64,000 bases of DNA from Convolutriloba macropyga (GCF_964194025.1 NC_134474.1:37262001-37326000); one strand, 5' to 3'. Shown: positions 11,481-39,259, numbered from the stretch's first letter. The notes: generated from the sequence alone by a model not told the origin. A program made the numbers and translations.

Positions 11481-11828
11481 CGCAAACCACTTCGGTCGCT
11501 AAAATTTAATGAATGTTAAATGAACTCTTTGGATAAGCTACCTTTCTCGCTTTCTTTGAAAACCTGTATGAACAAAATCATTACTCTCTTCTCGTGCTCA
11601 TCATTCGTTCAAAAGATTAAATGCAATGGCTACACGTGCGGCATTTGGACTGTTTATCATGTGAAAAATCGAAAGAACACGCCCTCATTTTATCGACATG
11701 CCTATTAGTATTCAACAATGTGGTTTTCTAGCGAAAGGCAAACTTTATTCTGTTTTCATTCAATCCGAAAACTATGAAAGAGATCGTGCTAACATGGCAA
11801 AACATGATTTAACAGTCATTTCTCTTAC

Positions 11829-12019
11829 TCGAAATCCCCTTCTCTTGGGCGAATCATGACAAACAGGGGAATGTGTGGGTATTTCAATTTAGTTAATCTG
11901 AACAAGGCCAGTGTTGGAGTCAATCCACCCAATGACAACGCAGAACATAGCTCTATCCTTGCTGCACCCGCCTCACAAGCATTCTTAACAGACTCAATAG
12001 AGTCCACACAGATCTCCAT
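11829..12019 (-). CDS. cutC: Copper homeostasis protein CutC homolog, first coding exon
   Basis: Translates MEICVDSIESVKNACEAGAARIELCSALSLGGLTPT...PLFVMIRPREGDF, the CutC N-terminal signature (EICVDS, RIELCS, GGLTP, MIRPRxGDF). It ends at a canonical donor TTCGA|GTAAGA (phase 2). Confidence 0.93.
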
Positions 12020-12227
12020 TCAGATGCTTCATTGGAATCGGAAAAAAATTGTTTCCCCAAGGAATAGTTTAGTTTATTTGAGATCAATTGATCCGTTTAA
12101 TCAGTCTTGCAAGGTAAGTAAACACAAAGATTAAACCTAAACTGACTAACGTCAGACGAATTGTTTTCGAACGACAGACGGGCAATTCAATTCAAAGGGG
12201 TGTGAAGCCTAGATAACTTTATGGGTG

Positions 12228-15621: not shown

Positions 15622-16581
15622 TGATCGCAACAGGCTTCGCCTCGGAACTTAATAACTTCTCGGTGGCGATAACAACCGTGCGGTAATATTCATTATTACA
15701 CTGGCAGTTTATTTAACTGCCATTATCGCAACAGAAGTTGATTAAAACTCGCATTTAAGACAGCGTACAAAGGCCCCCACCCCCTCCCCAATCCTCCTCG
15801 ATGGGCTACATCCTATTTACCAAAGCCAGAAATTAAAATGTTTATTTTAAAATGGTGACATAACTCTGTGTCATTTCAAAATTGCAGCTTAAATCTCGAA
15901 CCAGCATGACAGTATAGTACATTAATCAAAAACATTGCCATTAACATTGGATCTACGAAATGACCATTTGCCTTAAAATAAATTTTTATTGCAACCACAA
16001 ACGATCGGAATTTGGATTCGAAGAATCAGTATTTAATGAATGAGATCAATCAGGCAGGGATAATTAATGTAGGAAACCAGACGAAGTCAATAGTTACAGA
16101 TTGTCATTATATTTGCACATTAAAAAATTGAAAAATGTTATCGACAGGAAAACCAATCTCGAAATGCACTGGTCCTGTCTAGTTCAGGCTCAAGTTGATT
16201 GATACACAGGATTTGTTATCATTACTGCGTACTTTGAAATAACTAATAAGTTGGCTCTTTCCCAAAATTATAATCACCATTTTGGCATGTTTATATGTTG
16301 TATGACCACACTAAGGTGGAGAGGGGGTTTGAGAAAGACCCCAAAATATGCGATTAACAAAATACGGAAAACGCTAATTAAATTTTTGTCAAGTCAGTTG
16401 AAAACAATGCTGTCAGAAATAATCATGACCGCCGTTTGTCATGATATATAAATCTAGCAATTAAATAGTTGGTTAGAACAAAGGTAGTTAACATTTTCAA
16501 TTATGAATAATTTAAAATAGACAAATTCATACAACTGATGTACTCATAAAAAGAATACCGGCAGGCAATAATGGTGAAATT

Positions 16582-18890
16582 AAAACTCAATTGAACATTG
16601 TAACAAAATTGGGTACAAATGACTGGTTAGATAAATCACCCAGTGTGTCAACTCTCAGTAGAGCAAGAGTCTATTGTCATCTTCCGATAACTAGTGAGAT
16701 CAGACAAATATTTGAAATTCAAACAGGATCTCAAAAGTAATCAATAGTTCTCAAACAATTTAAAGGCGTCAGTTCTAATTTTGTTCACTCATTTATCAGA
16801 CAAGAGGTGTCAGAATACATCAGAGAACTTGATTTTAAATAAAACCTAATAAATCAGGATCAAAACAGCAGGTACAGCCGATCAACAATCAGATAGACAA
16901 CTAAGCTATAAGAAGGAAGCAAATAAATCCAGTGCCAAAAACTGAGTAACTCGGAGCAAGAACAATTTAAAGTTAATATTGAGGCGGAGTCTGCTATCTG
17001 CGTTACCTCTTACTTAACATAAACGAGAAATAAGTAATATGTAACTCCACAATAAATTAAAAACATCAAGTTTATATTGTTATTTCTCAGAGTTAAGTAT
17101 TGAAATTTGGATGTAAAACCAGAATCGTTTACAAAGATATTTGGGTCCACAGTCAGAGAGGGATAACTAACAAAGGACTCAGGACAAATCAACAAAAAAA
17201 ACAGTCATTATTAGAATTACAACAAAATCGATTTAGAGCCTACCTTGAGAATTTCACTGTCATTGAAAATTAAAAACGCAATTGAAAAAATGTCCTGAAA
17301 CATCAACTGAAACTAGGATTTAAACAATAACACCTCGTTCGAAAATGGTGACCAGCAAAACTCAATTCAACATTGTAACAAAATTGGGTACAAATGACTG
17401 GTTAGATAAATCACCCAGTTTGTCAACTCTCAGTAGAGCAAGAGTCTATTGTTATCGTCCGATAACTAGTGAGATCAGACAAATATTTGAAGTTCAAACA
17501 GGATCTCAAAAGTAATCAAAAGTTCTCAAAGTTTTAAGGCGTCAGTTCTAATTTTGTTCACTCATTTATCAGACAACAGGTGTCAGAATACATTACAGAA
17601 CTTGATTTTTAATAAAATCTAATAAATCAGGATCAAAACAGCAGGTACAGCCGATCAACAATCAGATAGACAGCTAAGCTATAAGAAGGAATCAATTACA
17701 TCCAGTGCCAAAAACTGAGTTACTCGGAGCAAGAACAATTTAAAGTTAATATTGAGGCGGAGTCTGCTATCTGCGTTACCTCTTACTTAACATAAACGAG
17801 AAATAAGTAATATGTAACTCCACAATAAATTAAAAACATCAAGTTTATATTGTTATTTCTCAGAGTTAAGTATTGAAATTTGGATGTAAAACCAGAATCG
17901 TTTACAAAGACATTTGGGTCCACACTCAGAGAGGGATAACTAACAAAGGACTCAGGACAAATCAACAAAAAAAACAGTCATTGTTAGAATTACAACAAAA
18001 TCGATTTAGAGCCTACCTTGAGAATTTCACTGTCATTGAAAATTAAAAACTCAATTGAAAAAATGTCCTGAAACATCAACTGAAACTAGGATTCAAACAA
18101 TAACACTTCGTTCGAAAAAGGTGACCAGCAAAACTCAATTCAACATTGTAACAAAATTGGGTACAAATGACTGCTTAGATAAATCACCCCGTTTGTCAAC
18201 TCTCAGTAGAGCAAGAGTCTAATGTTATCTTCCGATAACTAGTGAGATCAGACAAATATTTGAAGTTCAAACAGGATCTCAAAAGTAATCAAAAGTTCTC
18301 AAAGTTTTAAGGCGTCAGTTCTAATTTTGTTCACTCATTTATCAGACAACAGGTGTCAGAATACATTACAGAACTTGATTTTAAATAAAATCTAATAAAT
18401 CAGGATCAAACCAGCAGGTACAGCCGATCAACAATCAGATAGACAACTAAGCTATAAGAAGGAATCAATTACATCCAGTGCCAAAAACTGAATTACTCGG
18501 AGCAAGAACAATTTAAAGTTAATATTGAGGCCGAGTCTGCTATCTGCGTTACCTCTTACTTAACATAAACGAGAAATAAGTAATATGTAACTCCACAAAA
18601 AAAAATTAAAAACATCAAGTTTATATTGTTATTTCTCAGAGTTAAGTATTGAAATTTGGATGTAAAACCAACATTGTTTACAAAGATATTTGGGTCCACA
18701 GTCAGAGAGGGATAACTAACAAAGGACTCAGGACAAATCAACAAAATAACAGTGTCATCATTAGAATTACAACACAATCGATTTACAGCCCAGCTTGAGA
18801 ATCTCACAAAGTTAAAACAACTCAATTGCAAAAATGCCCTGAAACATCAACTGAAACTAGGATTCAAACCATAACACTTCGTTCGAAAAA
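16582..18890 (-). repeat. Tandem array, 773-bp unit x3; each unit has a Gm2791-type and a mutated snR38-type C/D snoRNA
   Basis: Identical landmarks at 17010/17783/18556. The units contain TCAGACAA(G/C)AGGTGTCAGAA and TCAGAGAGGGATAACT. Confidence 0.9.
16769..16823 (-). ncRNA. Box C/D snoRNA, Gm2791-type
   Basis: Minus strand: CTGATGT A TTCTGACACCTCTTG T CTGA ... ATGA ... CTGA. The 15-nt guide is complementary to LSU CAAGAGGUGUCAGAA. Confidence 0.7.
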
Positions 18891-21800
18891 AATACAACTA
18901 CAACTAAAATCGAGAAATTTAAGTCACACGAATCACAACAATAGAAAACAAATTGATCATAGGAAGGTTTAGATAGCGTCACCAAATCCGAAAGTTGTAA
19001 GAAATACCACCAAAAATTTTCCTGTCAAACAAGTAATATGACGAAAAACATTTCGCCTAACGAAGTGAAGCTAGAAGCCCAACCACAACCTAACCATTAA
19101 TTATATAATAGACCATGAACAACAATTTTCATACGGCAATTCAGTTTACATTTGAAAGCATCATCAAAAATCGGAAGAGGTGTCAGATATCATCCCGGCA
19201 ATATTTTGGCAAAATTGGTAAAAGAAAGGAGCAACGAACAATGAGAACAAAAACTCAAATTCAGATAAACTTAAAACGTCATTGTCAGTCAGAAGACCGT
19301 GGTGTCATAAAATTGCACAAACTTCATGCACAACATAAACGCACCATAGAAGCGAACAATTAAAAATTTTCCATTAAAACTGCTAAACCAATTGACATAC
19401 AAAAACTCTGAAGGATAGACTTCAAATGCCACCCATATATTCTACATTTTGAAGAATAAAAAATCTCCCAATTTTCATCAAAAGTTAAAACTTAAACATA
19501 TGAGCCCAATTTGCAATAAGCAGAGTCTGCTATCTGCGTTACCTCTCACTTAACATATACAAGAAATAATTAATATGTAACTCCACAAACATTAACTAAA
19601 ATTATCGCGTTTACAATCTAATTTATCAGAGTTAAATATTGAAATTTGGATGTAAAAGCAACGTCGTTTACAAAGAAATTTGGGTCCAGAATCAGAAAGG
19701 GATAACTAACAAAGGAATCAGGACAAATGAACAAAAAAACAGTGTCATTATTAGAACGACAACAAAACCGATTTACAGAATAGCTTGAGAATTTCACTAA
19801 GTCAAGAGAACATTCTAGAGAAAAATTTCAGAATTTCACTTGAAAATTGAAAACTCAATTAAAAAAATGTCCTGAAACATCAACTGAAACTCGGATTCAA
19901 ACCATAACACTTCGTTCGAGAAATATACAACTACAACTAAGTTTGAGAACTTTTAAGTCATACGACGCACATCAATGGAAAGAATGGACCATTATCGTCA
20001 ACAAAACCGGAGAGTTGTCAAAAAAACCAGAAAAGTTTTCCGTCTAAATTGTTTTAAGATGAATTAACAGTTCGCCTAACAAAGTGAAGCTAGGAGCACA
20101 ACTAAAACGTAACACTTGATTAAATAATCTGAAAAGGTGTCAGATAACATCACGGCAATATTTTGGCAAATTTTGATAAAAAAGAAAAACGAACAATGAG
20201 AACAAAAACTCAAATTCAGATGAATTTCAAGCGTCATTGTCAGTCAGAAGACCATCGAGAGTCATCGCATACAAGTACAAATTAAGCGCACACAAGAAAA
20301 GAGCAAGACTGCAATATTACAAAGATAAATCAGAAGGCAATAAAAAACATGAACTGCTAAGTTAGCCTTTTCATGGCAGCCGAGCATTATGACTCATAAG
20401 AATGTTCAAAATAATCGCAGATACTAGAATTCACCAGAGACAAATTCGTTTACAAACAAATTTGGTTCACACATCCGACAGGGATAACTAACGAAGGGAT
20501 TAGGTCAAATCAACAAAATAATACTGTCATCATTAGAATTACAATACAATCGATTTACAGCCGAGCTTGAGGAATTCACAGAGTCATTGAAAAATAAAAA
20601 CTCAATTGAAAAAAAGGCTTGAAACATCAACTGAAACTAGGATTCAAACCATAACACTTCGTTCGAGAAATATACAACCCAAACTAAGCTCGAGAAATTT
20701 AACTCATACGAATCACAACAATAGAAAACAAATTGATCGTTAGGAGGTTTAGATAGCGTCACTAAACCCGAAAAGTTTAGAAATACCACCAGTACAATTT
20801 CCTGTCGAACAAGTATGACGAAAAAGAATTCGTCCACCAAAAAGAAGCTAGAAGAACAATAACAATCTAACAATTGATTATATAGACCATGAACAACAAT
20901 TTTCATACGGCAATTCAGTTTACATTTGGCAACATCATAGAAAATCTGAAAAGGTGTCAGATATCACGGCAATATTTTGGCAAATTTAGTAAAAAAGGAG
21001 CAACGAACAATACGAAAAAAACTCAAATTCAGAAAATTTCAAGGCGTCACTGTCAGTCAGAAGACCGTCAAGAGTCATCACAAACAAGTACAATTTGAAC
21101 GCCACAAGAAAAGGGCAACACTTTAACATTACAAAGATAAATCTTATGGCAAAAGAAAACATTATCTGCTTTAACTCAGCCTAAGTTAGCCAAACTGTTT
21201 TTCATGGCAGCCGAGCATTCGAACTTAGAAGAATGTTCAAAACAATCGCAGATACTAGAATTGATTCTCAGTTACACTGCATTCACCAGAAACAAAGTTG
21301 TTTACAGACAAATTTGGGTTCACACATCAGACAGGGATAACTAACGAAGGGATCAGGTCAAATGAACAAAAAAACAGTGTCATCATTAGAATTACAACAC
21401 AATCGATTTACAGCCCAGCTTGAGAAAATCAAAGACATTCAAAATTAAAACCTTCAATTGAAAAAATGTCTTGAAACATCAACAGAAACTAGGATTCAAA
21501 CCATAACACTTCGTACGAGAAAAATACAATCACAACTAAGTTCGAGAAATTTAACTGACACGAATCACAGCAAAAGAAAACAAATTGATCATTAGAAGGT
21601 TTAGATAGCGTCACCAAAACCGAAAAGTTGTGAGAAATACCACCAGAACATATTCCTGTCGAACAAGTATTATGACGAAAAACAGCTCGTCTAACGAAGT
21701 GAAGTTAGAAGCACATCCACAACCTACCAATTGATTATATAATAGACCATGAACAACAATTTTCGTACGGCAATTTTCCATTTACATTTGAAAACATCAT

Positions 21801-24740
21801 CAAAAATCTGAAGAGGTGTCAGATATCACGGCAATATTTTGGCAAAGTTAGAAAAAAGGAGCAACGAACAATGCGAACAAAACTCAAATTCAGAAAATTT
21901 TAAAGCGTCACTGTCAGTCAGAAGACCGTCGAGAGTCATCACAAACAAGTACAAGTTGAACGCCACAAGAAACGAGCAACACTTTAACATTACAAAGATA
22001 AATCTTATGGCAAAATAAAACATTATCTGCTTTAACTCAACCTAAGTTAGCCAAACTGTTTTTCATGGCAGCCGAGCATTATAACTTAGAAGAATGTTCA
22101 AAATAATCGCAGATACTAGAAATGATTTTCAGTTACACTGCATTCACCAGAACAAAATCGTTTACAAACAAATTTGGGTTCACATATCAGACAGGGATAA
22201 CTAACGAAGGGATCAGGTCAAATCAACAAACAGTGTCATCACTAGAATTACAAAACAATTGGTTTACATTCCAGTTTGAGAATTTCACAAAGACACTCAA
22301 AATTAAAACCTCAAGAAAAAATGTCCCGAAACAACTGAAACTAGGATTCAAACCATAACTTTTCGATCGAGAAATATACAGCTACAACTAATTTCGAGAA
22401 ATTTAAGTCATAAGAATCACAACAATAGAAAATAAATTGATCATTAGAAGGTTTGATAGCTTTAAAAAATTCGAAAGTTGTAAGAAAAACCACCAGAACA
22501 TTTTACTGTCAAACAACTATTATGACGAAAAACATTTCGCCTAACGAAGTGCACCTAGAAGCACAACCACAACCTAGCCATTAATTATATAATAGACCAT
22601 GAACAACAATTTTTGTACGGCAATTTTCAGTTTACATTTGAAAACATCAAATATCTGAAGAGGTGTCAGATATCACGGCAATATTTTGGCGAAGTTAGAA
22701 AAAAGGAGCAACGAACAATGCGAACAAAACTCAAATTCAGAAAATTTTAAAGCGTCATTGTCAGTCAGAAGACCGTCGAGAGTCATCACAAACAATTAAA
22801 AGTTGAACGCCACAAGAAAAGAGCAACACTAACATTACAAAGATAAATCTTATGGCAAAAGAAAACATTATCTACTTTAACTCAGCCTAAGTTAGCCAAA
22901 CTGCTTTTCATGGCAGCCGAGCATTCGAACTTAGACGAATGTTCAAAACAATCGCAGATACTAGAATTGATTCAGAGTTACACTGCATTCACCAGAAACA
23001 AAGTCGTTTACAGACAAATTTGGGTTCACACATCAGACAGGGATAACTAACGAAGGGATCAGGTCAAATCAACAAACAGTGTCATCACTAGAATTACAAA
23101 ACAACCGATTTACATTCCAGTTTGAGAATTTTACAAAGACACTCAAATTTAAAACCTCAAGAAAAAATGTCTCGAACCAAGGATTCAAACCATAACTTTT
23201 CGATCGAGAAAAATACAACTACAACTAATTATGAGAAATTCAAGTCATAAGAATTACAACAATAGAAAATAAAATGATCATTAGAAGGTTTGATAGCTTC
23301 ACCAAATCCGAAAGTTGTAGGAAATACCACCAGAACAATTTACTGTCAAAAAAGTATTATGACAAAAAACATTTCGCCCAAAGGAGTGAAGCTAGAAGCA
23401 CAACCACAACATAACCATTAATTATATAATAGACCATGACCAACAATTTTCGTACGGCAATTCATTTTACATTTGAAAACATCACCAAAAATCTGAAGAG
23501 GTGTCAGATATCATCACGGCAAAGTTTTGACAAATTTGGAAAAGAAGCAACGAACAATGAGAACAAAAACTCAAACTCAGATAAATTTAAAGCGTCATTG
23601 TCAGTCAGAAGACCGTCGAGAGTCATCACAAACAAGTTCAAATTGAACGCACAAAAGAAAAGAGAAAGACTAACACTAAAAAGATAAATCATATGGCAGC
23701 ATAAAAGATGAACTGCTTTAACTCAGCCTAAGTTAGCCAAACTGTTTTTCAATGCAGCCGAGCATTATAAGTTAGAAGAATGTTCAAAATAATCGCAGAT
23801 ACTAGAATTGATTTTCAGTTCCACTGCATTCACAAGAAACAAATTCGTTTACAAACAAATTTGGGTTCACACATCAGACAGGGATAACTAACGAAGGGAT
23901 CAGGTCAAATCAGCAAAATAACGGTGTCATCATTAGAATTACAACACAATCGATTTACAGCCCAGCTTTAGAATTTCACAAAGTCATTGAAAATTAAAGA
24001 CTCAATTGAAAAGAAGTCCCGAAACATCAACTGAAACTAGGATTCAAACAATAACACATCGTTCGAAAAATATACAACTACAACTAAGTTCGAGAAATTT
24101 AAGTCATACGAATCACAACAATAGAAAACAAATTGAACATTAGAAGGTTTAGATAGCGTCAACAAATCCGAAAGTTGTAGGAAATACCACCAGAAAAATT
24201 TCCTAACGAACAAGTATTATGACGAAAAACAGCTCGTCTAACGAAGTGAAGCTAGAAGTACAACCACAACCTAACCATTGATTATATAATAGACCATAGA
24301 CAACAGCTTTCATACGGCAATTCAGTTTACATTTGAAAACATCATTGAAAATCTGAAGAGCTGTCAGATATTATCACGGCAAAGTTTTGACAAATTTGGA
24401 AAAGAAGGAGCAACAAACAATGAGAACAAAAACTTAAATTCAGATAAATTTAAAGCGTCATTGTCATTCAGAAGACCGTCGAGAATCATCACACACAAGT
24501 ACAAATTAAGTGCACACAAGAAAAGAGGGCAAGACTGTAAGATTACAAAGATAAATCTGAAGGCAATAAAAAACATGAACTGCTTTAACTCAGCCTAAGT
24601 TAGCCAAACTGTTTTTCACGGCAGCCGAGCATTATAACTCAGAAGAATGTTCAAAATAATTGCAGATACTAGAATTGATTTTCAGTTACACTCCATTCAG
24701 CAGAAACAAATTCGTTTACAAATAAATTTAGGTTCACACA

Positions 24741-24800
24741 TCAGACAGGGATAACTAACAAAGGGATCAGGTCAAATCAACAAAATAACAGTGTCATCAT
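24741..24800 (-). ncRNA. Box C/D snoRNA, snR38/SNORD1-like (LSU Gm2815 yeast numbering); representative copy of the 860-bp array
   Basis: Minus strand: box C ATGATGA ... internal CTGA (D') ... AGTTATCCCTGT-CTGA (box D). The 12-nt guide is complementary to LSU ACAGGGAUAACU, and D+5 pairs with the second G. Confidence 0.88.
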
Positions 24801-25189
24801 TAGAATTACAACACAATCGATTTACAGCTCAGCATGAGAATCTCACAAAGTCATTGAAAGTTAAAAAACTTAATTGCAAAAATGCCCGGAAACATCAACT
24901 GAAACTAGGATTCAAACCCTAAAACTTCGTTCGAGAAATATACAACCATAACTAAGTTAGAGAAATTTAACTCATACGAATCACAACAAAAGAAAACAAA
25001 TTAATCATTAGAAGGTTTAGATAGCGTCACCAAAGCCGAAAAATTAGGAGAAATACCCCCAGAACATATTCCTGTCGAACAAAATTATGACGAAAAACAG
25101 CTCGTCTAACGAAGTGAAGTTAGAAGCACAACAACAACCTACCAATTGATTATATAATAGACCATGAACAACAATTCTAATACGGCAAT

Positions 25190-25245
25190 TCAGTTTAGAT
25201 TTGAAAACATCATTGAAAATCTGAAGAGGTGTCAGATAACATCAC
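25190..25245 (-). ncRNA. Box C/D snoRNA, SNORD60/snR48-like (LSU Gm2793); representative copy
   Basis: Minus strand: GTGATGT (C variant) TA TCTGACACCTCT T CAGA (D') ... ATGATGT (C') ... CTGA (D). The guide is complementary to LSU AGAGGUGUCAGA. Confidence 0.8.
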
Positions 25246-25306
25246 GGCAAAGTTCTGTTAAATGAGGGAGCAACGAACACTGAGAACAAAAACAACACTG
25301 AGATTT

Positions 25307-25359
25307 TCAGATAATTTTAAAGCGTCATTGTCAGTCAGAAGACCGTCGAGAATCATCAC
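25307..25359 (-). ncRNA. Box C/D snoRNA, snR73/SNORD35-like (LSU Cm2959); representative copy
   Basis: Minus strand: GTGATGA (C) TTCTCGACGGTCT T CTGA (D') ... CAATGA (C'-like) ... CTGA (D). The guide matches LSU AGACCGUCGUGA at 11 of 12 positions. Confidence 0.8.
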
Positions 25360-28300
25360 ACACAAGTATAAATTAAGCGCACACAAGAAAAGAGCAAGAC
25401 TGTAAGATTACAAAGATAGATCCAAAGACAATATAAAACATGAACTGCTTTAACTCAGCCTTAGTTAGCCAAATTGTTTTTCATGGCAGCCGAGCATTAT
25501 AACTCAGAAGAATGTTCAAAATAATCGCAGAAACATGAATTGATTTTCAGTTACACTGCATTCACAAGAAACAAATTCGTTTACAAACAAATTTGGTTTC
25601 ACACATCCGACAGGGATAACTAACGAAGGGACCAGGTCAAATCAGCAAAATAACGGTGTCATCATTAGAATTACAATACAATCGATTTACAGCCCAGCTT
25701 TAGAATTTCACAAAGTCATTGAAAATTAAAGACTCAATTGAAAAGAAGTCCCGAAACATCAACTGAAACTAGGATTCAAACAATAACACATCGTTCGAAA
25801 AATATACAACTACAACTAAGTTCGAGAAATTTAAGTCATACGAATCACAACAATAGAAAACAAATTGAACATTAGAAGGTTTAGATAGCGTCACCAAAGC
25901 CAAAAAATAGGAGAAATACCACCAGAACATATTCCTGTCGAACAGAATTATGACGAAAAACAGCTCGTCTAACGAAGTGAAGTTAGAAGTACAACCACAA
26001 CCTAACCATTGATTATATAATAGACCATAAACAACAGCTTTCATACGGCAATTCAGTTTACATTTGAAAACATCATTGAAAATCTGAAGAGGTGACAGAT
26101 ATTATCACGGCAAAGTTTTGACAAATTTGGAAAAGAAGGAGCAACAAACAATGAGAACAAAAACTCAAATTCAGATAAATTTAAAGCGTCATTGTCATTC
26201 AGAAGACCGTCGAGAATCATCACACACAAGTACAAAATAAGCGCACACAAGAAAAGAGGGCAAGACTGTAAGATTAAAAAGATAAATCTGAAGGCAATAA
26301 AAAACATGAACTGCTTTAACTCAGCCTAAGTTAGCCAAACTCTTTTTCACGGCAGCCGAGCATTATAACTCAGAAGAATGTTCAAAATAATTGCAGATAC
26401 TAAAATTGATTTTCAGTTACACTGCATTCAGCAGAAACAAATTCGTTTACAAATAAATTTAGGTTCACACATCAGACAGGGATAACTAACAAAGGGATCA
26501 GGTCAAATCAACAAAATAACAGTGTCATCATTAGAATTACAACACAATCGATTTACAGCTCAGCATGAGAATCTCACAAAGTCATTAAAAGTTCAAAAAA
26601 AATCAATTGCAAAAATGCCCTGAAACATCAACTGAAACTAGGATTCAAACCATAACACTTCGTTCGAGAAATATACAACCACAACTAAGTTAGAGAAATT
26701 TAACTCATACGAATCACAACAAAAGAAAACAAATTAATCATTAGAAGGTTTAGATAGCGTCACCAAAGCCGAAAAAATAGGAGAAATACCCCCAGAACAT
26801 ATTCCTGTCGAACAAAATTATGACGAAAAACAGCTCGTCTAACGAAGTGAAGTTAGAAGCACAACAACAACCTACCAATTGATTATATAATAGACCATGA
26901 ACAACAATTCTAATACGGCAATTCAGTTTAGATTTGAAAACATCATTGAAAATCTGAAGAGGTGTCAGATAACATCACGGCAAAGTTCTGTTAAATGAGG
27001 GAGCAACGAACACTGAGAACAAAAACAACACTGAGATTTTCAGATAATTTTAAAGCGTCATTGTCAGTCAGAAGACCGTCGAGAATCATCACACACAAGT
27101 ATAAATTAAGCGCACACAAGAAAAAAAGAGCAAGACTGTAAGATTACAAAGATAAATCGGACGGCAATATAAAACATGCACTGCTTTAACTGGGCCTAAG
27201 TTAGCCAAACTGTTTTTCAAGGCAGCCGAGCATTATCACTTAGAAGAATGTTCAAAAAATAATCGCAGATACTAGAATTGGTTTTCAGTTACACTGCATT
27301 CAGCAGAAACAAACTCGTTTACAAACAAAATTGGGTTCACACATCAGACAGGGATAACTAACAAAGGGATCAGGTCAAATCAACAAAATAACAGTGTCAT
27401 CATTAGAATTACAACACAATCGATTTACAGCTCAGCATGAGAATCTCACAAAGTCATTGAAAGTTAAAAAACTCAATTGCAAAAATGCCCTGAAACATCA
27501 ACTGAAACTAGGATTCAAACCATAACACTTCGTTCGAGAAATATACAACCACAACTAAGTTAGAGAAATTTAACTCATACGAATCACAACAAAAGAAAAC
27601 AAATTAATCATTAGAAGGTTTAGATAGCGTCACCAAAGCCAAAAAATAGGAGAAATACCACCAGAACATATTCCTGTCGAACAGAATTATGACGAAAAAC
27701 AGCTCGTCTAACGAAGTGAAGTTAGAAGCACAACCACAACCTACCAATTGATTATATAATAGACCATGAAGAACAATTCTCATAGGTCAATTCAGTTTAG
27801 ATTTGAAAACATCATTGAAAATCTAAAGAGGTGTCAGATAACATCACGGCAAAGTTCTGGAAAATGAGGGAGCAACGAACACTGAGAACAAAAACTTAAA
27901 TTCAAATAATTTTAAAGCGTCATTGTCAGTCAGAAGACCGTCGAGAATCATCACACACAAGTATAAATTAAGCGCACACAAGAAAAAAGAGCAAGACTGT
28001 AAGATTACAAAGATAAATCGGACGGCAATATAAAACATGCACTGCTTTAACTGGGCCTAAGTTAGCCAAACTGTTTTTCAAGGCAGCCGAGCATTATAAC
28101 TTAGAAGAATGTTCAAAAAAAATAATCGCAGATACTAGAATTGATTTTCAGTTACACTGCATTCAGCAGAAACAAACTCGTTTACAAACAAAATTGGGTT
28201 CACACATCAGATAGGGATAACTAACGAAGGGATCAGGTCAAATCAACAAAAAAACACATTCATTATTAGAATTACAACACAATCAATTTACAGCCCAGCT

Positions 28301-31300
28301 TGAGAAATTCAAAGACAATCAAAATTAAAAATTTCAATTGAAAAAATGTCTTGAAACATCAACTGAAACTAGGATTCAAACCATAACACTCCGTTCGAGA
28401 AATATACAACCACAACTAAGTTCGAGAAAATTAACTCATACGAATCACAAGCATAGAAAACAATTTGATCATTAGAAATTTTAGATAGCGCCACCAAACC
28501 CGAAAAGATGTGAGAAATAATACCAGAACATATTCCTGTCGCACAAGCATTATGACGAAAAACAGCTCGTCTGACGAAGTGCAGCTAGAAGCACGGCCAC
28601 AACCTACCAATTGATTATATAATAGACCATGAACAACAATTCTCATAGGGCAATTCAGTTTAGATTTGAAAACATCATTGAAAATCTGAAGAGGTGTCAG
28701 ATAACATCACGGCAAAGTTCTGGAAAATGAGGGAGCAACGAACACTGAGAACAAAAACTTATATTCAGATAAATTTAAAGCATCATTGTCAGTCAGAAGA
28801 CCGTCGAGAATCATCACACACAAGTACAAATTAAGCGCACACAAGAAAAGAGAGCAAGACTGTAAGATTACAAAGATAGATCCAAAGACAATATAAAACA
28901 TGAACTGCTTTAACTCAGCCTAAGTTAGCCAAATTGTTTTTCATGGCAGCCGAGCATTATAACTCAGAAGAATGTTCAAAATAATCGCAGATACTAGAAT
29001 TGATTTTCAGTTACACTGCATTCAGAAGAAACAAATTCGTTTACAAACAAATTTTGTTTCACACATCAGACAGGGATAACTAACGAAGGGATCAGGTCAA
29101 ATCAACAAAAAAACACACTCATTATTAGAATTACAACACAATCAATTTACAGCCCAGCTTGAGAAATTCAAAGACAATCAAAATTAAAAAATTCAACTGA
29201 AAAAATGTCTTGAAACATCAACTGAAACTAGGATTCAAACCAAAACACTTCGTTCGAGAAATATACAACCACAACTAAGTTCGAGAAATTTAACTCACAC
29301 GAATCAAAGCAAAAGAAAACAAATTGATCATTAGAATGTTTAGATAGCGTCACCAAATCCGAAAAGTTGTGAGAAATACAACCAGAATATATTCCTGTCG
29401 AAAAACTATTATGACGAAAAACAGCTCGTCTAACGAAGTGAAGTTAGAAGCACAACCACAACCTACCAATTGATTATATAATAGACCATGAACAACAATT
29501 CTCATACGGCAATTCCGTTTAGATTTGAAAACATCATTGAAAATCCGAAGAGGTGTCAGATAACATCACGGCAAAGTTCTGGAAAATGAGGGAGCAACGA
29601 ACACGGAGAACAAAAACTTAAATTCAAATAATTTTAAAGCGTCATTGTCAGTCAGAAGACCGTCGACAATAATCACACAGAAGTACAAATTAAGCGCACA
29701 CAAGAAAAGAGAGCAAGACTGTAAGATTACAAAGATAGATCTGAAGGCAATATAAAACATGAACTTCTTTAACTCAGCCTAAGTTAGCCAAACTGTTTTA
29801 CATGGCAGCCGAGCATTATAACTTAGAATGTTCAAAATAATCGCAGATACTAGAATTAATTTTTAGTTACACTGCATTCACCAGAACAAATTCGTTTACA
29901 AACAAATTTGAGTTCACCACATCAGATAGGGATAACTAACGAAGGGATCAGGTCAAATGAACAAAATAACAGTGTCTTCATTAGACTTACAACACAATCG
30001 ATTTACAGCCCAGCTTGAGAAATTCAAAGAAATTCAAAATTAAAACCTTCAATTGAAAAAATATGTCTTGAAACATCAACAGAAACTAGGATTCAAACCA
30101 TAACACTTCGTACGAGAAAAATACAATCACAACTAAGTTCGAGAAATTTAACTGACACGAATCACAGCAAAAGAAAACAAATTGATCATTAGAAGGTTTA
30201 GATAGCGTCACCAAAACCGAAAAGTTGTGAGAAATACCACCAGAACATATTCCTGTCGAACAAGTATTATGACGAAAAACAGCTCGTCTAACGAAGTGAA
30301 GTTAGAAGCACATCCACAACCTACCAATTGATTATATAATAGACCATGAACAACAATTCTCATACGGCAATTCAGTTTAGATTTGAAAACATCATTGAAA
30401 ATCTGAAGAGGTGTCAGATAACATTACGGCAGAGTTCTGGAAAATGAGAGAGCAACGAACACGGAGAACAAAAACTTAAATTCAAATAATTTTAAAGCGT
30501 CTTTGTCAGTCAGAAGACCGTCGACAATCATCACACAGAAGTACAAATTAAGCGCACACAAGAAAAGAGAGCAAGACTGTAAGATTACAAAGATAGATCT
30601 GAAGGCAATATAAAATATGAACTTCTTTAACTCAGCCTAAGTTAGCCAAACTGTTTTACATGGCAGCCGAGCATTATAACTTAGAATGTTCAAAATAATC
30701 GCAGATACTAGAACTGATTTTTAGTTACACTGCATTCACCAGACCAAATTTGTTTACAAACAAATTTGAGCTCACCACACATCAGACAGGGATAACTAAC
30801 GAAGGGATCAGGTCAAATGAACAAAATAACAGTGTCATCATTAGAATTACAACACAATCGATTTACAGCCCAGCTTGAGAAATTCAAAGACATTCAAAAT
30901 TAAAACCTTCAATTGAAAAAATGTCTTGAAACATCAACTGAAACTAGGATTCAAACCAAAAACACTGCGTTCGAGAAATATACAACCACAACTAAGTTCG
31001 AGAAATTTAACTCACACGAATCACAGCAAAAGAAAACAAATTGATCATTAGAAGGTTTAGATAGCGTCACCAAATCCGAAAAGTTGTGAGAAATACCACC
31101 AGAACATTTTACTGTCAAACAAGTATTATGACGAAAAACTTTTGGCCTAACGAAGTGAAGCTAGAAGCACAACCACAACCTACCAATTGATTATATAATA
31201 GACCATGAACAACAATTCTCATACGGCAATTCAGTTTAGATTTGAAAACATCATTGAAAATCTGAAGAGGTGTCAGATAACATTACGGCAGAGTTCTGGA

Positions 31301-34300
31301 AAATGAGAGAGCAACGAACACGGAGAACAAAAACTTAAATTCAAATAATTTTAAAGCGTCTTTGTCAGTCAGAAGACCGTCGACAATCATCACACAGAAG
31401 TACAAATTAAGCGCACACAAGAAAAGAGAGCAAGACTGTAAGATTACAAAGATAGATCTGAAGGCAATATAAAATATGAACTTCTTTAACTCAGCCTAAG
31501 TTAGCCAAACTGTTTTACATGGCAGCCGAGCATTATAACTTGAATGTTCAAAATAATCGCAGATACTAGAACTAATTTTTAGTTACACTGCATTCACCAG
31601 ACCAAATTCGTTTACAAACAAATTTGAGCTCACCACACATCAGACAGGGATAACTAAGGAAGGGATCAGGTCAAATGAACAAAATAACAGTGTCATCATT
31701 AGAATTACAACACAATCGATTTACAGCCCAGCTTGAGAAATTCAAAGACATTCAAAATTAAAACCTTCAATTGAAAAAATGTCTTGAAACATCAACTGAA
31801 ACTAGGATTCAAACCAAAAACACTGCGTTCGAGAAATATACAACCACAACTAAGTTCGAGAAATTTAACTCACACGAATCACAGCAAAAGAAAACAAATT
31901 GATCATTAGAAGGTTTAGATAGCGTCACCAAATCCGAAAAGTTGTGAGAAATACCACCAGAACATTTTACTGTCAAACAAGTATTATGACGAAAAACATT
32001 TCGCCTAACGAAGTGAAGCTAGAAGCACAACCACAACCTAACCATTAATTATACAATAGACCATGAACAACAATTTTCGTACGGCAATTTTCCGTTTACA
32101 TTTGAAATTATCATCAAAAATCTGAAGAGGTGTCAGATATCACGGCAATATTTTGGCAAATTTAGAAAAAAAAGGAGCAACAAACAATGCGAACAAAACT
32201 CAAATTCAGAAAATTTTAAGGCGTCACTGTCAGTCAGAAGACCGTCGAGAGTCATCACACAAACAAGTACAAGTTGAACGCCACAAGAAAAGAGCAACAC
32301 TTTAACATTACAAAGATAAATCTTATGGCAAAATAAAACATTATCTGCTTTAACTCAACCTAAGTTAGCCAAACTGTTTTTCATGGCAGCCGAGCATTAT
32401 AACTTAGAAGAATGTTCAAAATAATCGCAGATACTAGAAATGATTTTCAGTTACACTGCATTCACCAGAACAAATTCGTTTACAAACAAATTTGGGTTCA
32501 CATATCAGACAGGGATAACTAACGAAGGGATCAGGTCAAATCAACAGAACAACATGTTCATCACTAGAATTACAACACAATCGATTTACAGCCCAGCTTG
32601 AGAAATTCAAAGACATCCAAAATTAAAAACTTCAATTGAAAAAATGTCTTGAAACATCAACAGAAACTAGGATTCAAACCAAAACACTTCGTTCGAGAAA
32701 AATACAATCACAACTAAGTTCGAAAAATTTAACTGACACGAATCACAGCAAAAGAAAACAAATTGATCATTAGAAGGTTTACATAGCGTCACCAAAACCG
32801 AAAAGTTGTGAGAAATACCACCAGAACATATTCCTGTCGAACAAGTATTATGACGAAAAACAGCTCGTCTAACGAAGTGAAGTTAGAAGCACAACCACAA
32901 CCTACCAATTGATTATATAATAGACCATGAAAACAATTCTCATAGGTCAATTCAGTTTAGATTTGAAAACATCATTGAAAATCTAAAGAGGTGTCAGATA
33001 ACATCACGGCAAAGTTCTGGAAAATGAGGGAGCAACGAACACTGAGAACAAAAATTTAAATTCAGATAAATTTAAAGCGTCATTGTCAGTCAGAAGACCG
33101 TCGAGAATCATCACACAGAAGTACAAATTAAGCGCACACAAGAAAAGAGCAAGACTGAAGATTACAAAGATAGATCTGAAGGCAATATAAAACATGAACT
33201 GCTTAAACTCAGCCTAAGTTCGCCAAACTGTTTTTCATGGCAGCCGAGCATTATAACTTAGAAGAATGTTCAAAATAATCGCAGATACTAGAAATGATTT
33301 TCAGTTACACTGCATTCACCAGAACAAATTCGTTTACAAACAAATTTGGGTTCACATATCAGACAGGGATAACTAACGAAGGGATCAGGTCAAAACAACA
33401 GAACAACATGTTCATCACTAGAATTACAACACAATCGATTTACAGCCCAGCTTGAGAAATTCAAAGACATCCAAAATTAAAAACTTCAATTGAAAAAATG
33501 TCTTGAAACATCAACAGAAACTAGGATTCAAACCAAAACACTTCGTTCGAGAAAAATACAATCACAACTAAGTTCGAAAAATTTAACTGACACGAATCAC
33601 AGCAAAAGAAAACAAATTGATCATTAGAAGGTTTACATAGCGTCACCAAAACCGAAAAGTTGTGAGAAATACCACCAGAACATATTCCTGTCGAACAAGT
33701 ATTATGACGAAAAACAGCTCGTCTAACGAAGTGAAGTTAGAAGCACAACCACAACCTACCAATTGATTATATAATAGACCATGAAGAACAATTCTCATAG
33801 GTCAATTCAGTTTAGATTTGAAAACATCATTGAAAATCTAAAGAGGTGTCAGATAACATCACGGCAAAGTTCTGGAAAATGAGGGAGCAACGAACACTGA
33901 GAACAAAAATTTAAATTCAGATAAATTTAAAGCGTCATTGTCAGTCAGAAGACCGTCGAGAATCATCACACACAAGTACAAATTAAGCGCACACAAGAAA
34001 AGAGAGCAAGACTGTAAGATTACAAAGATAGATCCAAAGACAATATAAAACATGAACTGCTTTAACTCAGCCTAAGTTAGCCAAATTGTTTTTCATGGCA
34101 GCCGAGCATTATAACTCAGAAGAATGTTCAAAATAATCGCAGATACTAGAATTGATTTTCAGTTACACTGCATTCAGAAGAAACAAATTCGTTTACAGAC
34201 AAATTTGAGTTCACCACACATCAGACAGGGATAACTAACGAAGGGATCACGTCAAATCAACAAAATAACAGTGTCATCATTAGAATTACAACACAATCGA

Positions 34301-37300
34301 TTTACAGACCAGCTTGAGAATCTCAGAAAGTCATTAAAAGTTAAAACTCAATTGAAAAAATGTCCTGAAACATCAACTGAAACTAGGATTCAAACCATAA
34401 CACTCCGTTCCAGAAATATACAACCACAAATAAGTTCGAGAAATTTAACTCACACGATTCACAGCAAAAGAAAACAAATTGATCATTAAAAGGTTTAGAT
34501 AGCGTCACCAAATCCGAAAAGTTGTGAGAAATACCACCAGAACATTTTACTGTCAAACAAGTATTATGACGAAAAACATTTCGCCTAACGAAGTGAAGCT
34601 AGAAGCACAACCACAACATAACCATTAATTATATAATAGACCATGAACAACAATTTTCGTACGGCAATTTTCAGTTTACATTTGAAAACATCATCAAAAA
34701 TCTGAAGAGGTGTCAGATATCACGGCAATATTTTGGCAAATTTAGAAAAAAAAGAGCAACAAACAATGCGAACAAAACTCAAATTCAGAAAATTTTAAAG
34801 CGTCACTGTCAGTCAGAAGACCGTCGAGAGTCATCACAAACAAGTACAAGTTGAACGCCACAAGAAAAGAGCAACACTTTAACAATAAAGATAAATCTTA
34901 TGGCAAAACAAAACATTATCTGCTTTAACTCGGCCTAAGTTAGCCAAACTGTTTTTCATGGCAGCCGAGCATTATAACTTAGAAGAATGTTCAAAATAAT
35001 CGCAGATACTAGAATTGATTTTCAGTTACACTGCATTCACCAGAACAAATTTGTTTACATACAAATTTGAGTTCACCACACATCAGACAAGGGATAACTA
35101 ACGAAGGGATCAGGTCAAATCAACAAAATAACAGTGTCATCATTAGAATTACAACACAATCGATTTACAGCCCAGCTTGAGAAATTCAAAGACATTCAAA
35201 ATTAAAAACTTCAATTGAAAAAATGTCTTGAAACATCAACTGAAATTAGGATTCAAACCAAAAACACTTCGTTCGAGAAATATACAACCACAACTAAGTT
35301 CGAGAAATTCAACTCACACGAATCACAGCAAAAGAAAACAAATTGATCATTAGAAGGTTTAGATAGCATCACCAAATCCGAAAAGTTGTGAGAAATACCA
35401 CCAGAACATTTTACTGTCAAACAAGTATTATGACGAAAAACATTTCGCCTAACGAAGTGAAGCTAGAAGCACAACCACAACCTAACCATTAATTATATAA
35501 TAGACCATGAACAACAATTTTCGTACGGCAATTTTCCATTTACATTTGAAATCATCAAAAATCTGAAGAGGTGTCAGATATCACGGCAATATTTTGGCAA
35601 ATTTAGAAAAAAAGGAGCCACAAACAATGCGAACAAAACTCAAATTCAGAAAATTTTAAGGCGTCACTGTCAGTCAGAAGACCGTCGAGAGTCATCACAC
35701 AAACAAGTACAAGTTGAACGCCACAAGAAAAAAGCAACACTTTAACATTACAAAGATAAATCTTATGGCAAAATAAAACATTATCTGCTTTAACTCAGCT
35801 TAAGTCAGCCAAACTGTTTTTCATGGCAGCCGAGCATTAGAACTGAAGAATGTTCAAAATAATCGCAGAAACTAGAATTTATTTTCAGTTATACTGCATT
35901 CACCAGAAACAAATTCGTTTACAGACAAATTTGAGTTCACCACACATCAGACAGGGATAACTAACGAAGGGATCACGTCAAATCAACAAAATAACAGTGT
36001 CATCATTAGAATTACAACACAATCGATTTACAGCCCCGCTTGAGAATCTCACAAAGTCATTGAAAGTTAAAAACTCAATTGAAAAAATGTCCCGAAACAT
36101 CAACTGAAACTAGGATTCAAACCATAACACTCCGTTCGAGAAATATACAACCACAACTAAGTTCGAGAAATTTAACTCATACGAATGACAACAATAGAAA
36201 ACAATTTGATCATTAGAAATTTTAGATAGCGTCACCAAATCCGAAAAGTTGTGATTTTCCTGTCGAACAACTATTATGACGAAAAACAATTCGTTTGACG
36301 AAGTGCAGCTAGAAGCACGGCCACAACCTACCAATTGATTACATAATAGACCATGAACAACAATTCTCATAGGGCAATTCAGTTTAGATTTGAAAACATC
36401 ATTGAAAATCTGAAGAGGTGAAGAGGTGTCAGATTACATCACGGCAAAGTTCTGGAAATGAGGGAGCAACGAACACTGAGAACAATAACTTAAATTCAGA
36501 TAAATTTAAAGCGTCATTGTCAGTCAGAAGACCGTCGAGAATCATCACACACAAGTACAAATTAAGCGCACACAAGAAAAGAGAGCAAGACTGTAAGATT
36601 ACAAAGATAGATCTGAAGGCAAAATAAAACATGAACTGCTTTAACTCAGCCTCAGTTAGCCAAACTGTTTTTCATGGCAGCCGAGCATTATAACTTAGAA
36701 GAATGTTCAAAATAATCGCAGATACTAGAATTGATTTTCAGTTACACTGCATTCACCAGAACAATTTCGTTTACAAACAAATTTGAGTTCACCACAGAAC
36801 AGACAGGGATAACTAACGAAGGGATCGGGTCAAATCAACAAAATAACAGTGTCATCATTAGAATTACAACACAATCGATTTACAGACAAGCTTGAGAATC
36901 TCAGAAAGTCATTAAAAGTTAAAACTCAATTGAAAAAATGTCCTGAAACATCAACTGAAACTAGGATTCAAACCATAACACTCCGTTCGAGAAATATACA
37001 ACCACAACTAAGTTCGAGAAATTTAACTCATACGAATCACAACAATAGAAAACAAATTGATCATTAGAAATTTTAGATAGCGTCACCAAATCCGAAAGTT
37101 GTAGGAAATACCACCAGAAAAAGTTCCTAACGAACAAGTATTATGACGAAAAACAGCTCGTCTAACGAAGTGCAGCTAGAAGCACGAGCCCAACCTAAAA
37201 ATTGATTTTACAGCAGACCGTAAACAACAATTTTCAAACGGCAATTCAGTTTACATTTGGAAACATTATTGAAAATCTGAAGAGGTGTCAGATAACATTA

Positions 37301-39259
37301 CGGCAAAGTTTTGGCAAATTTGGAAAAGAAGGAAAAACGAACACTGAGAACAAAAAGTCAAATTCAGACAAATTTAAAGCGCCATTGTCAGTCAGAAGAC
37401 CGTCGAGAGTCATCACAAACAAGTACAAATTAAATGCACACAAGAAACGAGCAAGACTAACATTAAAAAGATAAATCTTATGGCAATATAAAAAATGAAC
37501 TGCTTTAACTCAGCCTAAGTTAGCCAAATTGTTTTTCATGGCAGCCGAGCATTGTAACTTAGAAGAATGTTCAAAACAATCGCAGATACTAGAATTGATT
37601 TTCAGTTACACTGCATTCACCAGAAACAAATTCGTTTACGAACAAATTCGGGTTCACACATCAGACAGGGATAACTAACGAAGGGATCAGGTCAAATCAA
37701 CAAAACAACATATTCATCATTAGAATTACAACACAATCGATTTACAGCCCAGCTTGAGAAATTCAAACCAAAACACTTGGTTCGAGAAATATACAACCAC
37801 AACTAAGTTCGAGAAATTTAACTCACACGAATCACAGCAAAAGAAAACAAATTGATCATTAGAAGGTTTAGATAGCGTCACCAAATCCGAAAAGTTGTGA
37901 GAAATACAACCAGAACATTTTCCTGTCGAACATGTATTATGACGAAAAATAGTTTGTCTAACGAAATGCAGCTAGAAGCACAACCCCAAACTAAAAATTG
38001 ATTTTAAAATAGAACATGAACAACAATTTTCATATCGCAATTCAGTTTACATTGGTAAACATCATTGAAAATCTGAAGAGGTGTCAGATAACATCACGGC
38101 AATATATTGGCACATTTGGGAAAAAAAGGAGCAACGAGCAATGAGAACAAAAATAGAGTACCAATTAAAAGCACACTAAAAAATATAGCAAGACTGTAAG
38201 ATTAAAAAGATAAACCTGATGGCAATATAACACACGAACTGCTGTAATTCAGCCTAAGTTAGCCAAACTGTTTTTCATGGCAGCCGATCATTAGAACTTA
38301 AAAGAATGTTCAAAAAAATCGCAGATACCTAATTCATTTTCAGTTACACTGCATTCGCCAGAGCAATATCGGACAACAGGTGTCAAAATTTATTACCCCA
38401 AGAAAGGAAAACGTAACCACTGCTAAAGAGATACTGTAACCAAGCATGAGAATTCAACCGTTCTGGAGCCCATTCCGAACAAGAACTACAAGTCTGTTCA
38501 AATCAAAAATCTTCTCTTTCTATCTGAGAGTGATAGCATGGATCTGAAAAGTAAGCAATAGTTCTCGAACAATTTAAAGACCTCAATTCTAATTCTGCTC
38601 ACTCATTTATCAGACAACAGGTCTCAGAACACATCACAAATTTTGATTTTAAATATTAACAGCTCAAAAAACTCAGGCTCTAAATACAGCAGTTTCCAGC
38701 GATCGACAAGCGAAGACATAACTAAGATATCAGTGGCAATTAATTACATCCAGTGTCAACAAAAAGTAAATCGGAGCTGGAACAATTTAAAGTTGCTGAT
38801 CAGTCAGAATGTTTGGAAAATTACATTAAAAATCGTCTTGACATCATAAAGATCAAACAATTATCTCAAATTGTGCATGAAGAGCACATGTGCCGAAAAG
38901 CTTCAGCTTCGATTAAAAAATGAACTAAATTTATCTCCTCTGATCACAAAATGCCAACTAACAGAAGTACCAATAAATCTATGAGATCGAAACACTGAAC
39001 TCAAACACGGCCCAATTTTTCCGTTTCGCGATGTTGTAGATGTGAGGTGTTGGAATATTATATTCAAATTCATATCACGGAGACTCCTTTGTGAGGCAGC
39101 AGCCTATCAGAAAATTTAAAGACATCTTATCCTTAGGATTTGATGCCTGATAACAGTGCGCTCATTTAACTCAAGTCTACCAAGGACTATCACAATGTAA
39201 GAACTTTCCGGGCCCGTGCAGAAATGCACGACTCCCCTTGATGCTATGCAAAAAAAAAC

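Follow-up and report, generated by a model that had tools for sequence, protein, structure and literature searches.

Tandemly repeated clusters of small nucleolar RNA (snoRNA) genes are found in Euglena gracilis. In animals, dozens of head-to-tail box C/D snoRNA units form the SNORD115 and SNORD116 tandem arrays of the mammalian Prader-Willi locus (PMC4063771, PMC8789076, PMC12429941, PMC3413130), which evolve by birth-and-death and conversion in placental mammals (PMC4063771, PMC8789076). The SNORD115/116 arrays are imprinted and eutherian-specific, and their units carry one orphan snoRNA, without a target in ribosomal RNA (rRNA), inside host-transcript introns. In the polycistronic clusters found in plants (PMC2875012) and in trypanosomatids (PMC6562600), different snoRNA genes share an orientation and are separated by short spacers, and whole-cluster duplication, gene fragments and mutated guides are found among related clusters. 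Here, we describe a tandem array of snoRNA-like genes in a 64,000-nt stretch (the window) of chromosome 7 of the acoel Convolutriloba macropyga (G000:C7:37262001-37326000). The acoel array resembles the SNORD115/116 arrays in its head-to-tail box C/D units, in the mixing of its subfamilies and in the presence of decayed copies beside intact ones, but each unit carries three different predicted guides for canonical, deeply conserved rRNA sites. The features listed above for the plant and trypanosomatid clusters also recur in the acoel array. However, precursor transcripts have been demonstrated for the plant and protist clusters, whereas the acoel array belongs to a bilaterian animal and repeats its cassette about 22 times, and its precursor is a prediction. 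Judged from its boxes and guides, the array is a tandemly amplified multi-snoRNA cassette in a bilaterian, with guides predicted to aim at canonical rRNA sites. A full-text literature search returned no paper treating snoRNAs in acoels, and in the 15 papers where the two words co-occur, one of them is mentioned in passing. The array may thus offer a first look at snoRNA gene organisation in Xenacoelomorpha and a non-mammalian and presumably non-imprinted counterpart to SNORD115/116.

The array occupies positions 18876-38360 of the window on the minus strand (19.5 kb) and consists of 22 head-to-tail units of ~860 bp (18876 to 37834) and a stump whose homology to the units stops exactly at 38360. 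All coordinates are window positions, and each unit boundary was placed at a constant distance from the snR38-type guide on the minus strand. The most frequent spacing of repeated 16-mers is 852-870 bp between ~20 and 38 kb. An earlier sequence-only reading had placed ~22 copies of an ~860-bp unit at 18890-38360, and both the 16-mer spacing and the unit boundaries bear this out. In the identity matrix, pairwise identity among 20 core units is 84-97%, and the first two units, at the low-coordinate end, are less similar (71-87% identity to the core). The snR38-type guide with its box (16 nt), searched with at most three errors, has 52 matches on the minus strand and one on the plus strand. The array sits within a larger snoRNA cluster at ~16-58.5 kb of the window, in which every snoRNA-like gene is on the minus strand. 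A comparison of open reading frames across the units identified no frame common to successive 860-bp units.

On the minus strand, each unit contains an snR38/SNORD1-type gene (R38-type), a U35/SNORD35-type gene and a U60/SNORD60-type gene, in the order that the sequence-only reading had given and that a gene-by-gene reading of the units recovered. The genes are followed by spacers of ~190, ~55 and ~390 nt, the last of which reaches the first gene of the next unit. The R38-type gene (~120 nt) comprises box C (ATGATGA or GTGATGA, present in 18 of the 22 units), 23 nt, an internal CTGA, 10 nt, the guide GTTAGTTATCCCTGT, CTGA, a degenerate box C′ and a distal CTGA (16 of 22, and displaced by 2 nt in one further unit). 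This layout is that of snoR38, in which box C, a ~40-nt spacer, the guide, box D′, a degenerate C′, a short gap and box D follow one another, but the acoel gene differs from snoR38 in its length, in the extra internal CTGA and in a score below the family cut-off. The U35-type gene (53 nt) consists of GTGATGA (19 of 22 units), a guide ending in CGACGGTCTT, CTGA, AATGACG and CTGA, with CTGA present in 18 of 22 units. The U60-type gene (56 nt) consists of GTGATGT, the guide TCTGACACCTCTT, CAGA, ATGATGT and CTGA (15 of 22 units); its consensus box C retains the G-A core and lacks the final A. As read from the sequence, the flanks of the U35-type gene are able to form eight pairs, including two G-U pairs, with one mismatch. 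The R38- and U60-type genes are flanked in every array unit by direct repeats (Table 1) in the place of the inverted repeats expected for a terminal stem that would bring boxes C and D together. These direct repeats are possibly old insertion or recombination scars. For the second guides upstream of the distal boxes and for the 23-nt stretch after the R38-type box C, pairing revealed no convincing rRNA target above chance.

The predicted targets of the three guides were identified by pairing them against the large-subunit (LSU) and small-subunit (SSU) rRNAs of the same genome, which were retrieved by a pattern search, and are numbered in the species' own LSU. The R38-type guide forms 15 bp, including two G-U pairs, and the fifth nucleotide upstream of its box faces G2944. 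The U60-type guide forms 13 bp, and the fifth-nucleotide rule directs it to G2922. The U35-type guide forms 9 bp, a U-U mismatch and 3 bp, and the same rule directs it to C3088. The R38- and U60-type genes thus each have an antisense element of at least ~10 nt that abuts a D or D′ box and is directed at a known methylation site, and the U35-type gene is borderline in this respect. The three sites, which lie towards the 3′ end of the LSU and presumably in domains V-VI by homology, are separated by 22 and 144 nt. The same spacings separate G2793, G2815 and C2959 in yeast, which we take to be the sites of snR48, snR38 and snR73, as well as G4340, G4362 and C4506 in human, which we take to be those of SNORD60, SNORD1 and SNORD35. 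This agreement indicates that the family names snR38, U35 and U60, already used in the sequence-only reading, are right, and the best sub-threshold Rfam matches concur weakly. The predicted target nucleotides are accordingly shared with snR38/SNORD1/plant snoR38 (RF00213), snR73/SNORD35/snoZ161_228 (CL00056) and SNORD60 (RF00271)/snR48. We consider the anatomy of the array and these family assignments to be very probably correct.

A separate guide family, ending in CACCTCTTGT before CTGA or TTGA, is located at 16799, 39914, 60559, 62025 and 63571 and aims at LSU G2920. Because G2920 and G2922 are targeted by separate guide families, the two sites of yeast snR48 appear to be covered by two genes here, unlike the arrangement in yeast, and the U60-type gene represents the SNORD60 half. 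The ribosomal DNA (rDNA) from which the rRNAs derive comprises ~600 copies (C20 and C3) with internal transcribed spacers of ~3.7 kb (ITS1) and ~1.7 kb (ITS2). The 18S, 5.8S and 28S rRNAs are very divergent, and the 5.8S rRNA scores only 87.7 bits in Rfam.

In the proposed mechanism, RNA polymerase II would transcribe the minus strand into long precursors, from which assembly of small nucleolar ribonucleoproteins and exonucleolytic trimming would release the snoRNAs. The three genes would then direct fibrillarin to 2′-O-methylate G2944 (R38-type), C3088 (U35-type) and G2922 (U60-type) of the LSU rRNA. The confinement of all snoRNA-like genes to one strand across 16-58.5 kb suggests common transcription, and the T5-T6 runs inside every unit (consensus) argue against one long RNA polymerase III transcript.

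A different mode of expression, compatible with the multi-snoRNA cassette described above, is that the array represents a long non-coding host gene built from repeated intron-exon units, like SNORD116, and that the snoRNAs are derived from spliced introns. This mode is possible but doubtful. A GTAAAT motif ~25 nt upstream of the R38-type box C is kept in the array and in diverged paralogues, namely at 47963 and in the 923-bp units of a neighbouring array described below, and AG dinucleotides are located 72 nt past the R38-type distal box and 70 nt past the U60-type box D in the consensus. In vertebrate intronic box C/D snoRNAs, the spacing to the acceptor is close to 70-72 nt. However, chance alone would place AG dinucleotides at such distances, a pyrimidine tract is missing from the candidate acceptor that follows the R38-type gene, and the U35- and U60-type genes, ~55 nt apart, leave no room for an exon and would have to share one intron. 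The splice-like GTAAAT and AG motifs could be chance occurrences. The spacer directly downstream of the R38-type gene (consensus positions 236-307, e.g. ~27212-27284) favours an intronic origin in that it changes as slowly as the gene itself and includes a 16-nt window with a single substitution event; this spacer may correspond to the 3′ part of an intron or to a processing signal. Also consistent with an intronic arrangement is a gene of the CutC family (copper homeostasis), which lies 4 kb downstream of the cluster and on its strand. Its exons are located at 11816-12022 and 1097-1351, with a third exon just below the window, and the gene could be a mere neighbour or could host the cluster within an upstream intron.

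Sequence constraint on the array was assessed by counting substitution events by parsimony on a tree of the 20 core units. The boxes and guides underwent 44 events at 99 sites (0.44 per site), compared with 666 events at the remaining 763 sites (0.87 per site), and the three guides alone underwent eight events at 40 sites (0.20 per site). The deficit in the boxes and guides corresponds to approximate P values of 3.6e-7 (Poisson) and 0.0024 (Mann-Whitney), and random windows of the guide lengths contain so few events in 0.08% of trials (p = 0.0008). The slow change of the guides cannot be explained by their G/C content, as G/C sites overall evolve faster than A/T sites. A weaker signal comes from nucleotide diversity, which is 0.085 in the snoRNA segments and 0.128 in the spacers (permutation p 0.045). 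Among the three genes, conservation is strongest in the U35-type gene (10 events, 29.7 expected).

The exact U35- and U60-type guide-plus-box words occur only in this window within the 1.18-Gb assembly, so that no locus other than the cluster can supply those guides. Words consisting of the R38-type guide and CTGA are dispersed over seven loci (six chromosome-scale sequences and one small contig), where they belong to near-identical interspersed repeats with a CTGATGA motif 66 nt upstream of the guide; this repeat has the appearance of a snoRNA-like module within a mobile element. Another interspersed repeat family, found at three loci, contains CTGACACCTCTTCTGA without a box C. Both types of word were rejected as other genomic sources of the guides because they lie in near-identical interspersed repeats. 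The reduced change of the boxes and guides, together with the sole-locus status, argues against a purely neutral satellite. A good part of the array is likely, by a reasonable though not large measure, to consist of genes that work or recently worked under selection. A stretch that repeat masking would call satellite is the only locus in the genome for two conserved, predicted rRNA-methylation guides.

The alternative is a neutral satellite of snoRNA pseudogenes, produced by amplification of one ancestral three-gene cluster through unequal crossing-over, in which the array would be silent or useless and the working genes would be the few singletons at 39-58 kb. A number of observations point in this direction and weigh against a working array. 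The P values given above are approximate because the copies are related and recombine, although the direction and size of the effect are clear. All three genes match the consensus in only one of the 22 units (26646-27517); the other 21 depart from it in at least one box or guide, and units were duplicated together with their lesions. Both box C (GTGATGT) and box D′ (CAGA) of the U60-type gene are non-canonical and differ from those of SNORD60, and a U60-type copy with a canonical box C is located outside the array, at ~49240. No convincing terminal stems were identified, and the folding energies are no better than those of shuffled sequence. No Rfam match reaches the gathering threshold anywhere in the window. 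The covariance-model scores, which the sequence-only reading had proposed for checking the copies, returned the expected families as best matches, always on the minus strand, but all of them (18-30 bits) fall below the gathering cut-offs (42-45). Among the matches listed, snoR38 (RF00213) is the best family for each of 14 copies with 20.8-30.2 bits (cut-off 45), and SNORD60 (RF00271) matches one copy, at 34666-34741, with 19.6 bits (cut-off 42); snoZ161_228 (RF00328, SNORD35 clan CL00056) scores 19.1-23.1 bits (cut-off 45).

The U35-type guide bears on this alternative. Unlike that of SNORD35, every U35-type guide in the array is mismatched at guide position 11, counted from the box, which leaves nine contiguous pairs. 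A compensating rRNA variant was rejected, as the facing position is never A, C or G in the rDNA copies. Perfect U35-type guides, with an 11-nt complementarity, occur only outside the array, at 40370, 48905 and 51808, and these are the sole perfect C3088 guides in the genome. Two of the three perfect-guide copies (48905 and 51808) have canonical boxes C and D. However, the suspect U35-type gene is the very gene that has changed least, and the guides as a whole change at about one quarter of the rate seen elsewhere in the unit. Moreover, only the pairing part of the U35-type guide, positions 2-10, is constant, whereas positions 11-14 differ between subfamilies, which is the pattern expected of a used guide. 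The array U35-type guide may thus work with a short duplex.

A second array in the window, at 40795-44979, also favours the neutral alternative. Its 921-923-bp units are 96-99% identical to one another and ~73% identical to the 860-bp units. In these units, the U35-type box C reads GTGGTGA, the R38-type gene lacks a box C, and the U60-type guide has a T>G change next to the box. The 923-bp array seems to have arisen by recent amplification of a cassette that is mostly dead, and the near-identity of its units, although two of the three genes look dead, indicates that amplification without function happens at this locus. Considering both sides, we regard the neutral-satellite alternative as unlikely for the 860-bp array.

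The array probably grows, shrinks and homogenises by unequal crossing-over and gene conversion while individual copies decay, and selection on the pooled output would keep the guides intact in many copies, i.e. birth-and-death with dosage-type selection. We put forward only tentatively the further proposal that the guides for three deeply conserved LSU methylation sites come mainly from a satellite-like array, maintained by selection on pooled, partly decayed copies rather than as single intronic genes. If true, a euglenid- or kinetoplastid-style organisation would have arisen independently in a bilaterian, and the copy number of the array could set the level of rRNA methylation.

The relationships among the units indicate how the array has changed. 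A maximum-likelihood tree of the monomers, as the sequence-only reading had suggested building, separates a six-unit subfamily (subfamily A) with 99/99 support. The members of subfamily A are located at 20.6-23.2, 31.8-32.7 and 34.4-36.1 kb, interleaved with the other subfamily. A nearest-neighbour analysis of unit thirds revealed that the nearest relative shifts along the units, which are therefore mosaics. In unit 17 (32679-33532), the first third is shared at 100% identity with unit 16 on the left, and the last third, likewise at 100%, with unit 18 on the right. Similarly, unit 4 (21501-22360) is closest to subfamily A in its middle and to subfamily B at its end. A BLAST search for long near-identical multi-unit blocks in the 860-bp array yielded no more than its one-unit register overall. 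Pairs of units with one unit between them have 95-96% identity, and spacings of 1731-1733 and 2579-2581 bp are frequent among the repeats, which suggests that blocks of two and of three units have been duplicated. Three adjacent units (29240-31813) have an R38-type CTAA and a U35-type TTGA in common, and the 97% identity of units 14 and 15 indicates that lesions were copied along with the unit. The mosaic units, the scattered subfamily and the lesions common to neighbours support the birth-and-death evolution by unequal crossing-over that had been put forward at the outset. The sequence data fit unequal crossing-over together with gene conversion, in which damaged copies would be duplicated as readily as intact ones.

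Individual lesions are unevenly distributed over the three genes (Table 1). The U35-type gene equals the consensus in 15 of 22 units and the R38-type gene in 11, not counting the unit with the displaced distal box. The U60-type gene does so in three units; three more differ only by TAGA for CAGA and two more only by a 3-nt deletion in box C (GATAACATCAC to GATATCAC). This deletion, for which four examples had been listed in the sequence-only reading, is present in six units, at 20959, 21821, 22668, 32135, 34715 and 35576, and all six belong to subfamily A. The deletion need not inactivate the gene because the resulting GTGATAT keeps the G-A core of box C, to which weight is given on the basis of C/D kink-turn geometry. 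Further lesions reported from the same reading were located as described: the substitution in the snR38-type guide at ~28207 and ~29922 is a G>A change, the insertion in this guide at ~35083 is 1 nt long, and the partial duplication of the U60-type guide at 36411-36430 comprises 8 nt inside the guide. The loss of a box D at ~36799 stands as a CTGA to CTGT change, but the affected box is the D′ directly after the guide in the snoR38 layout and not the terminal D. With 22 dated copies of three genes and clear lesions, the array constitutes a compact natural test of selection on multi-copy RNA genes.

Table 1. Units of the 860-bp array and their predicted genes. "Consensus" denotes that boxes C, D′ and D and the guide equal the array consensus. 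Scores are Rfam bits.
Feature	Position	Strand	R38-type	U35-type	U60-type	Remarks
Unit 1	18876-19865	-	19573-19752 (long form); box C ATAATGA, guide reads TTT	19261-19308; box C lost	19141-19196; D′ CCGA	990 bp; 71-77% to core; all genes damaged
Unit 2	19866-20647	-	20432-20534; post-guide box CGGA, 3′ part deleted	20216-20268; box C GCGATGA, guide CGATGG	20129-20153 (truncated); 3′ half deleted	782 bp; all genes damaged
Unit 3	20648-21500	-	21268-21387; consensus	21029-21081; guide C>T (would give G-U)	20915-20967; 3-nt box C deletion, guide C>T	Subfamily A
Unit 4	21501-22360	-	22129-22243; consensus	21890-21942; consensus	21775-21829; 3-nt deletion, D TGGA	Subfamily A; snoR38 27.0
Unit 5	22361-23206	-	22974-23089; distal box displaced by 2-nt insertion	22737-22789; consensus	22625-22676; 3-nt deletion	Subfamily A; snoZ161_228 23.1
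Unit 6	23207-24047	-	23815-23934; consensus	23577-23629; consensus	23462-23517; canonical box C GTGATGA, D ATGA	
Unit 7	24048-24914	-	24682-24801; consensus	24440-24492; consensus	24322-24377; box C GTGATAA, guide C>G	snoR38 29.9; 96% to unit 9
Unit 8	24915-25779	-	25547-25666; post-guide box CGGA	25307-25359; consensus	25190-25245; consensus	95% to unit 10
Unit 9	25780-26645	-	26413-26532; consensus	26171-26223; consensus	26053-26108; box C GTGATAA, guide A>T	snoR38 30.2 (array best)
Unit 10	26646-27517	-	27285-27404; consensus	27040-27092; consensus	26923-26978; consensus	Sole unit with three consensus genes
Unit 11	27518-28380	-	28148-28267; box C ATAATGA, guide G>A	27902-27954; D TTGA	27792-27847; D′ TAGA	
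Unit 12	28381-29239	-	29007-29126; box C ATAATGA	28765-28817; consensus	28655-28710; consensus	
Unit 13	29240-30095	-	29863-29982; box C ATGAAGA, guide G>A, distal CTAA	29624-29676; box C GTGATTA, D TTGA	29514-29569; D′ CGGA, D CGGA	Most damaged core unit
Unit 14	30096-30955	-	30721-30842; distal CTAA	30482-30534; D TTGA	30372-30427; box C GTAATGT	snoR38 21.8
Unit 15	30956-31813	-	31579-31700; lesion of unit 14	31341-31393; lesion of unit 14	31231-31286; lesion of unit 14	97% to unit 14
Unit 16	31814-32678	-	32447-32565; consensus	32206-32258; consensus	32089-32143; 3-nt deletion, C′ ATGATAA, D CGGA	Subfamily A
Unit 17	32679-33532	-	33301-33419; consensus	33062-33114; consensus	32952-33007; D′ TAGA	Mosaic
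Unit 18	33533-34394	-	34159-34281; consensus	33917-33969; consensus	33807-33862; D′ TAGA	
Unit 19	34395-35257	-	35022-35144; 1-nt guide insertion	34785-34837; consensus	34669-34723; only 3-nt deletion	Subfamily A; SNORD60 19.6
Unit 20	35258-36120	-	35885-36007; consensus	35646-35698; consensus	35533-35584; 3-nt deletion, C′ deletion, D TGGA	Subfamily A
Unit 21	36121-36972	-	36738-36859; post-guide box CTGT	36496-36548; consensus	36379-36442; 8-nt duplication in guide	
Unit 22	36973-37834	-	37602-37721; consensus	37364-37416; consensus	37246-37301; box C GTAATGT, C′ ATAATGT	snoR38 28.3
Stump	37835-38360	-	38340-38360; last 21 nt only	Absent	38042-38097; consensus	Upstream array end
R38-type flanking direct repeats			27400-27415 with 27268-27284			AATTCTA; one example
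U60-type flanking direct repeats					26979-26985 with 26915-26922	TTGCCGT; one example

The array was also compared with short-read contigs from other samples. The four runs used look like DNA because their contigs are fragmented over genes and spacers alike and their totals are near the genome size in three of the four; no spliced read or joint turned up in these DNA-like runs. In a 6-kb test stretch of 30 bins, the contigs cover every bin, in many cases at an identity of at least 99%, and they include the junction at the upper edge of the array; the sequence immediately past 38360 recurs as the loose end of a contig from another sample. The reproduction of unit variants and of the array edge in other samples indicates that the array is not an assembly artefact. 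A shorter repeat falsely expanded, or haplotypes stacked in tandem, is a highly improbable explanation even for an assembly with many gaps from a genome with a high heterozygosity of 3.65% (PMC13650328), given that the units differ by 3-16% in a structured and mosaic manner, that the window contains no N and that contigs of other samples match both unit variants and array edge at an identity of at least 99%. In one run from 2016, a 340-nt contig that matches the singleton U60-type copy at ~49240 has a depth of 16.7, compared with 4-5 for contigs matching the array; this contrast could reflect a difference in copy number if the run is DNA, or expression if it is RNA.

Several further features surround the array. 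A 142-aa plus-strand frame recurs in the 923-bp units and has only a weak, sub-threshold Pfam match. At 16570-18890, three older ~774-bp units, 95-96% identical to one another and ~60% identical to the 860-bp units, contain a mutated R38-type guide (CCCTCT), a replaced U35-type gene and a G2920-type guide in the place of the U60-type guide. A 161-bp tandem repeat of 12 copies is located at 53009-54982, and its monomer looks like a compact R38-type snoRNA, with ATGATGA, 24 nt, CTGA, TGATGA, a guide and CTGA. A 32-bp tandem repeat, which can also be read as a 63-bp repeat, is found at 3031-3230. Beside it, a plus-strand frame at 1590-1973 has a weak endonuclease-reverse-transcriptase match, and the frame and the adjoining repeat probably represent a retroelement remnant. 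In the mitochondrial cox1 gene of the species, TGA encodes Trp, AGA and AGG occur at serine positions, and ATA occurs at methionine positions.

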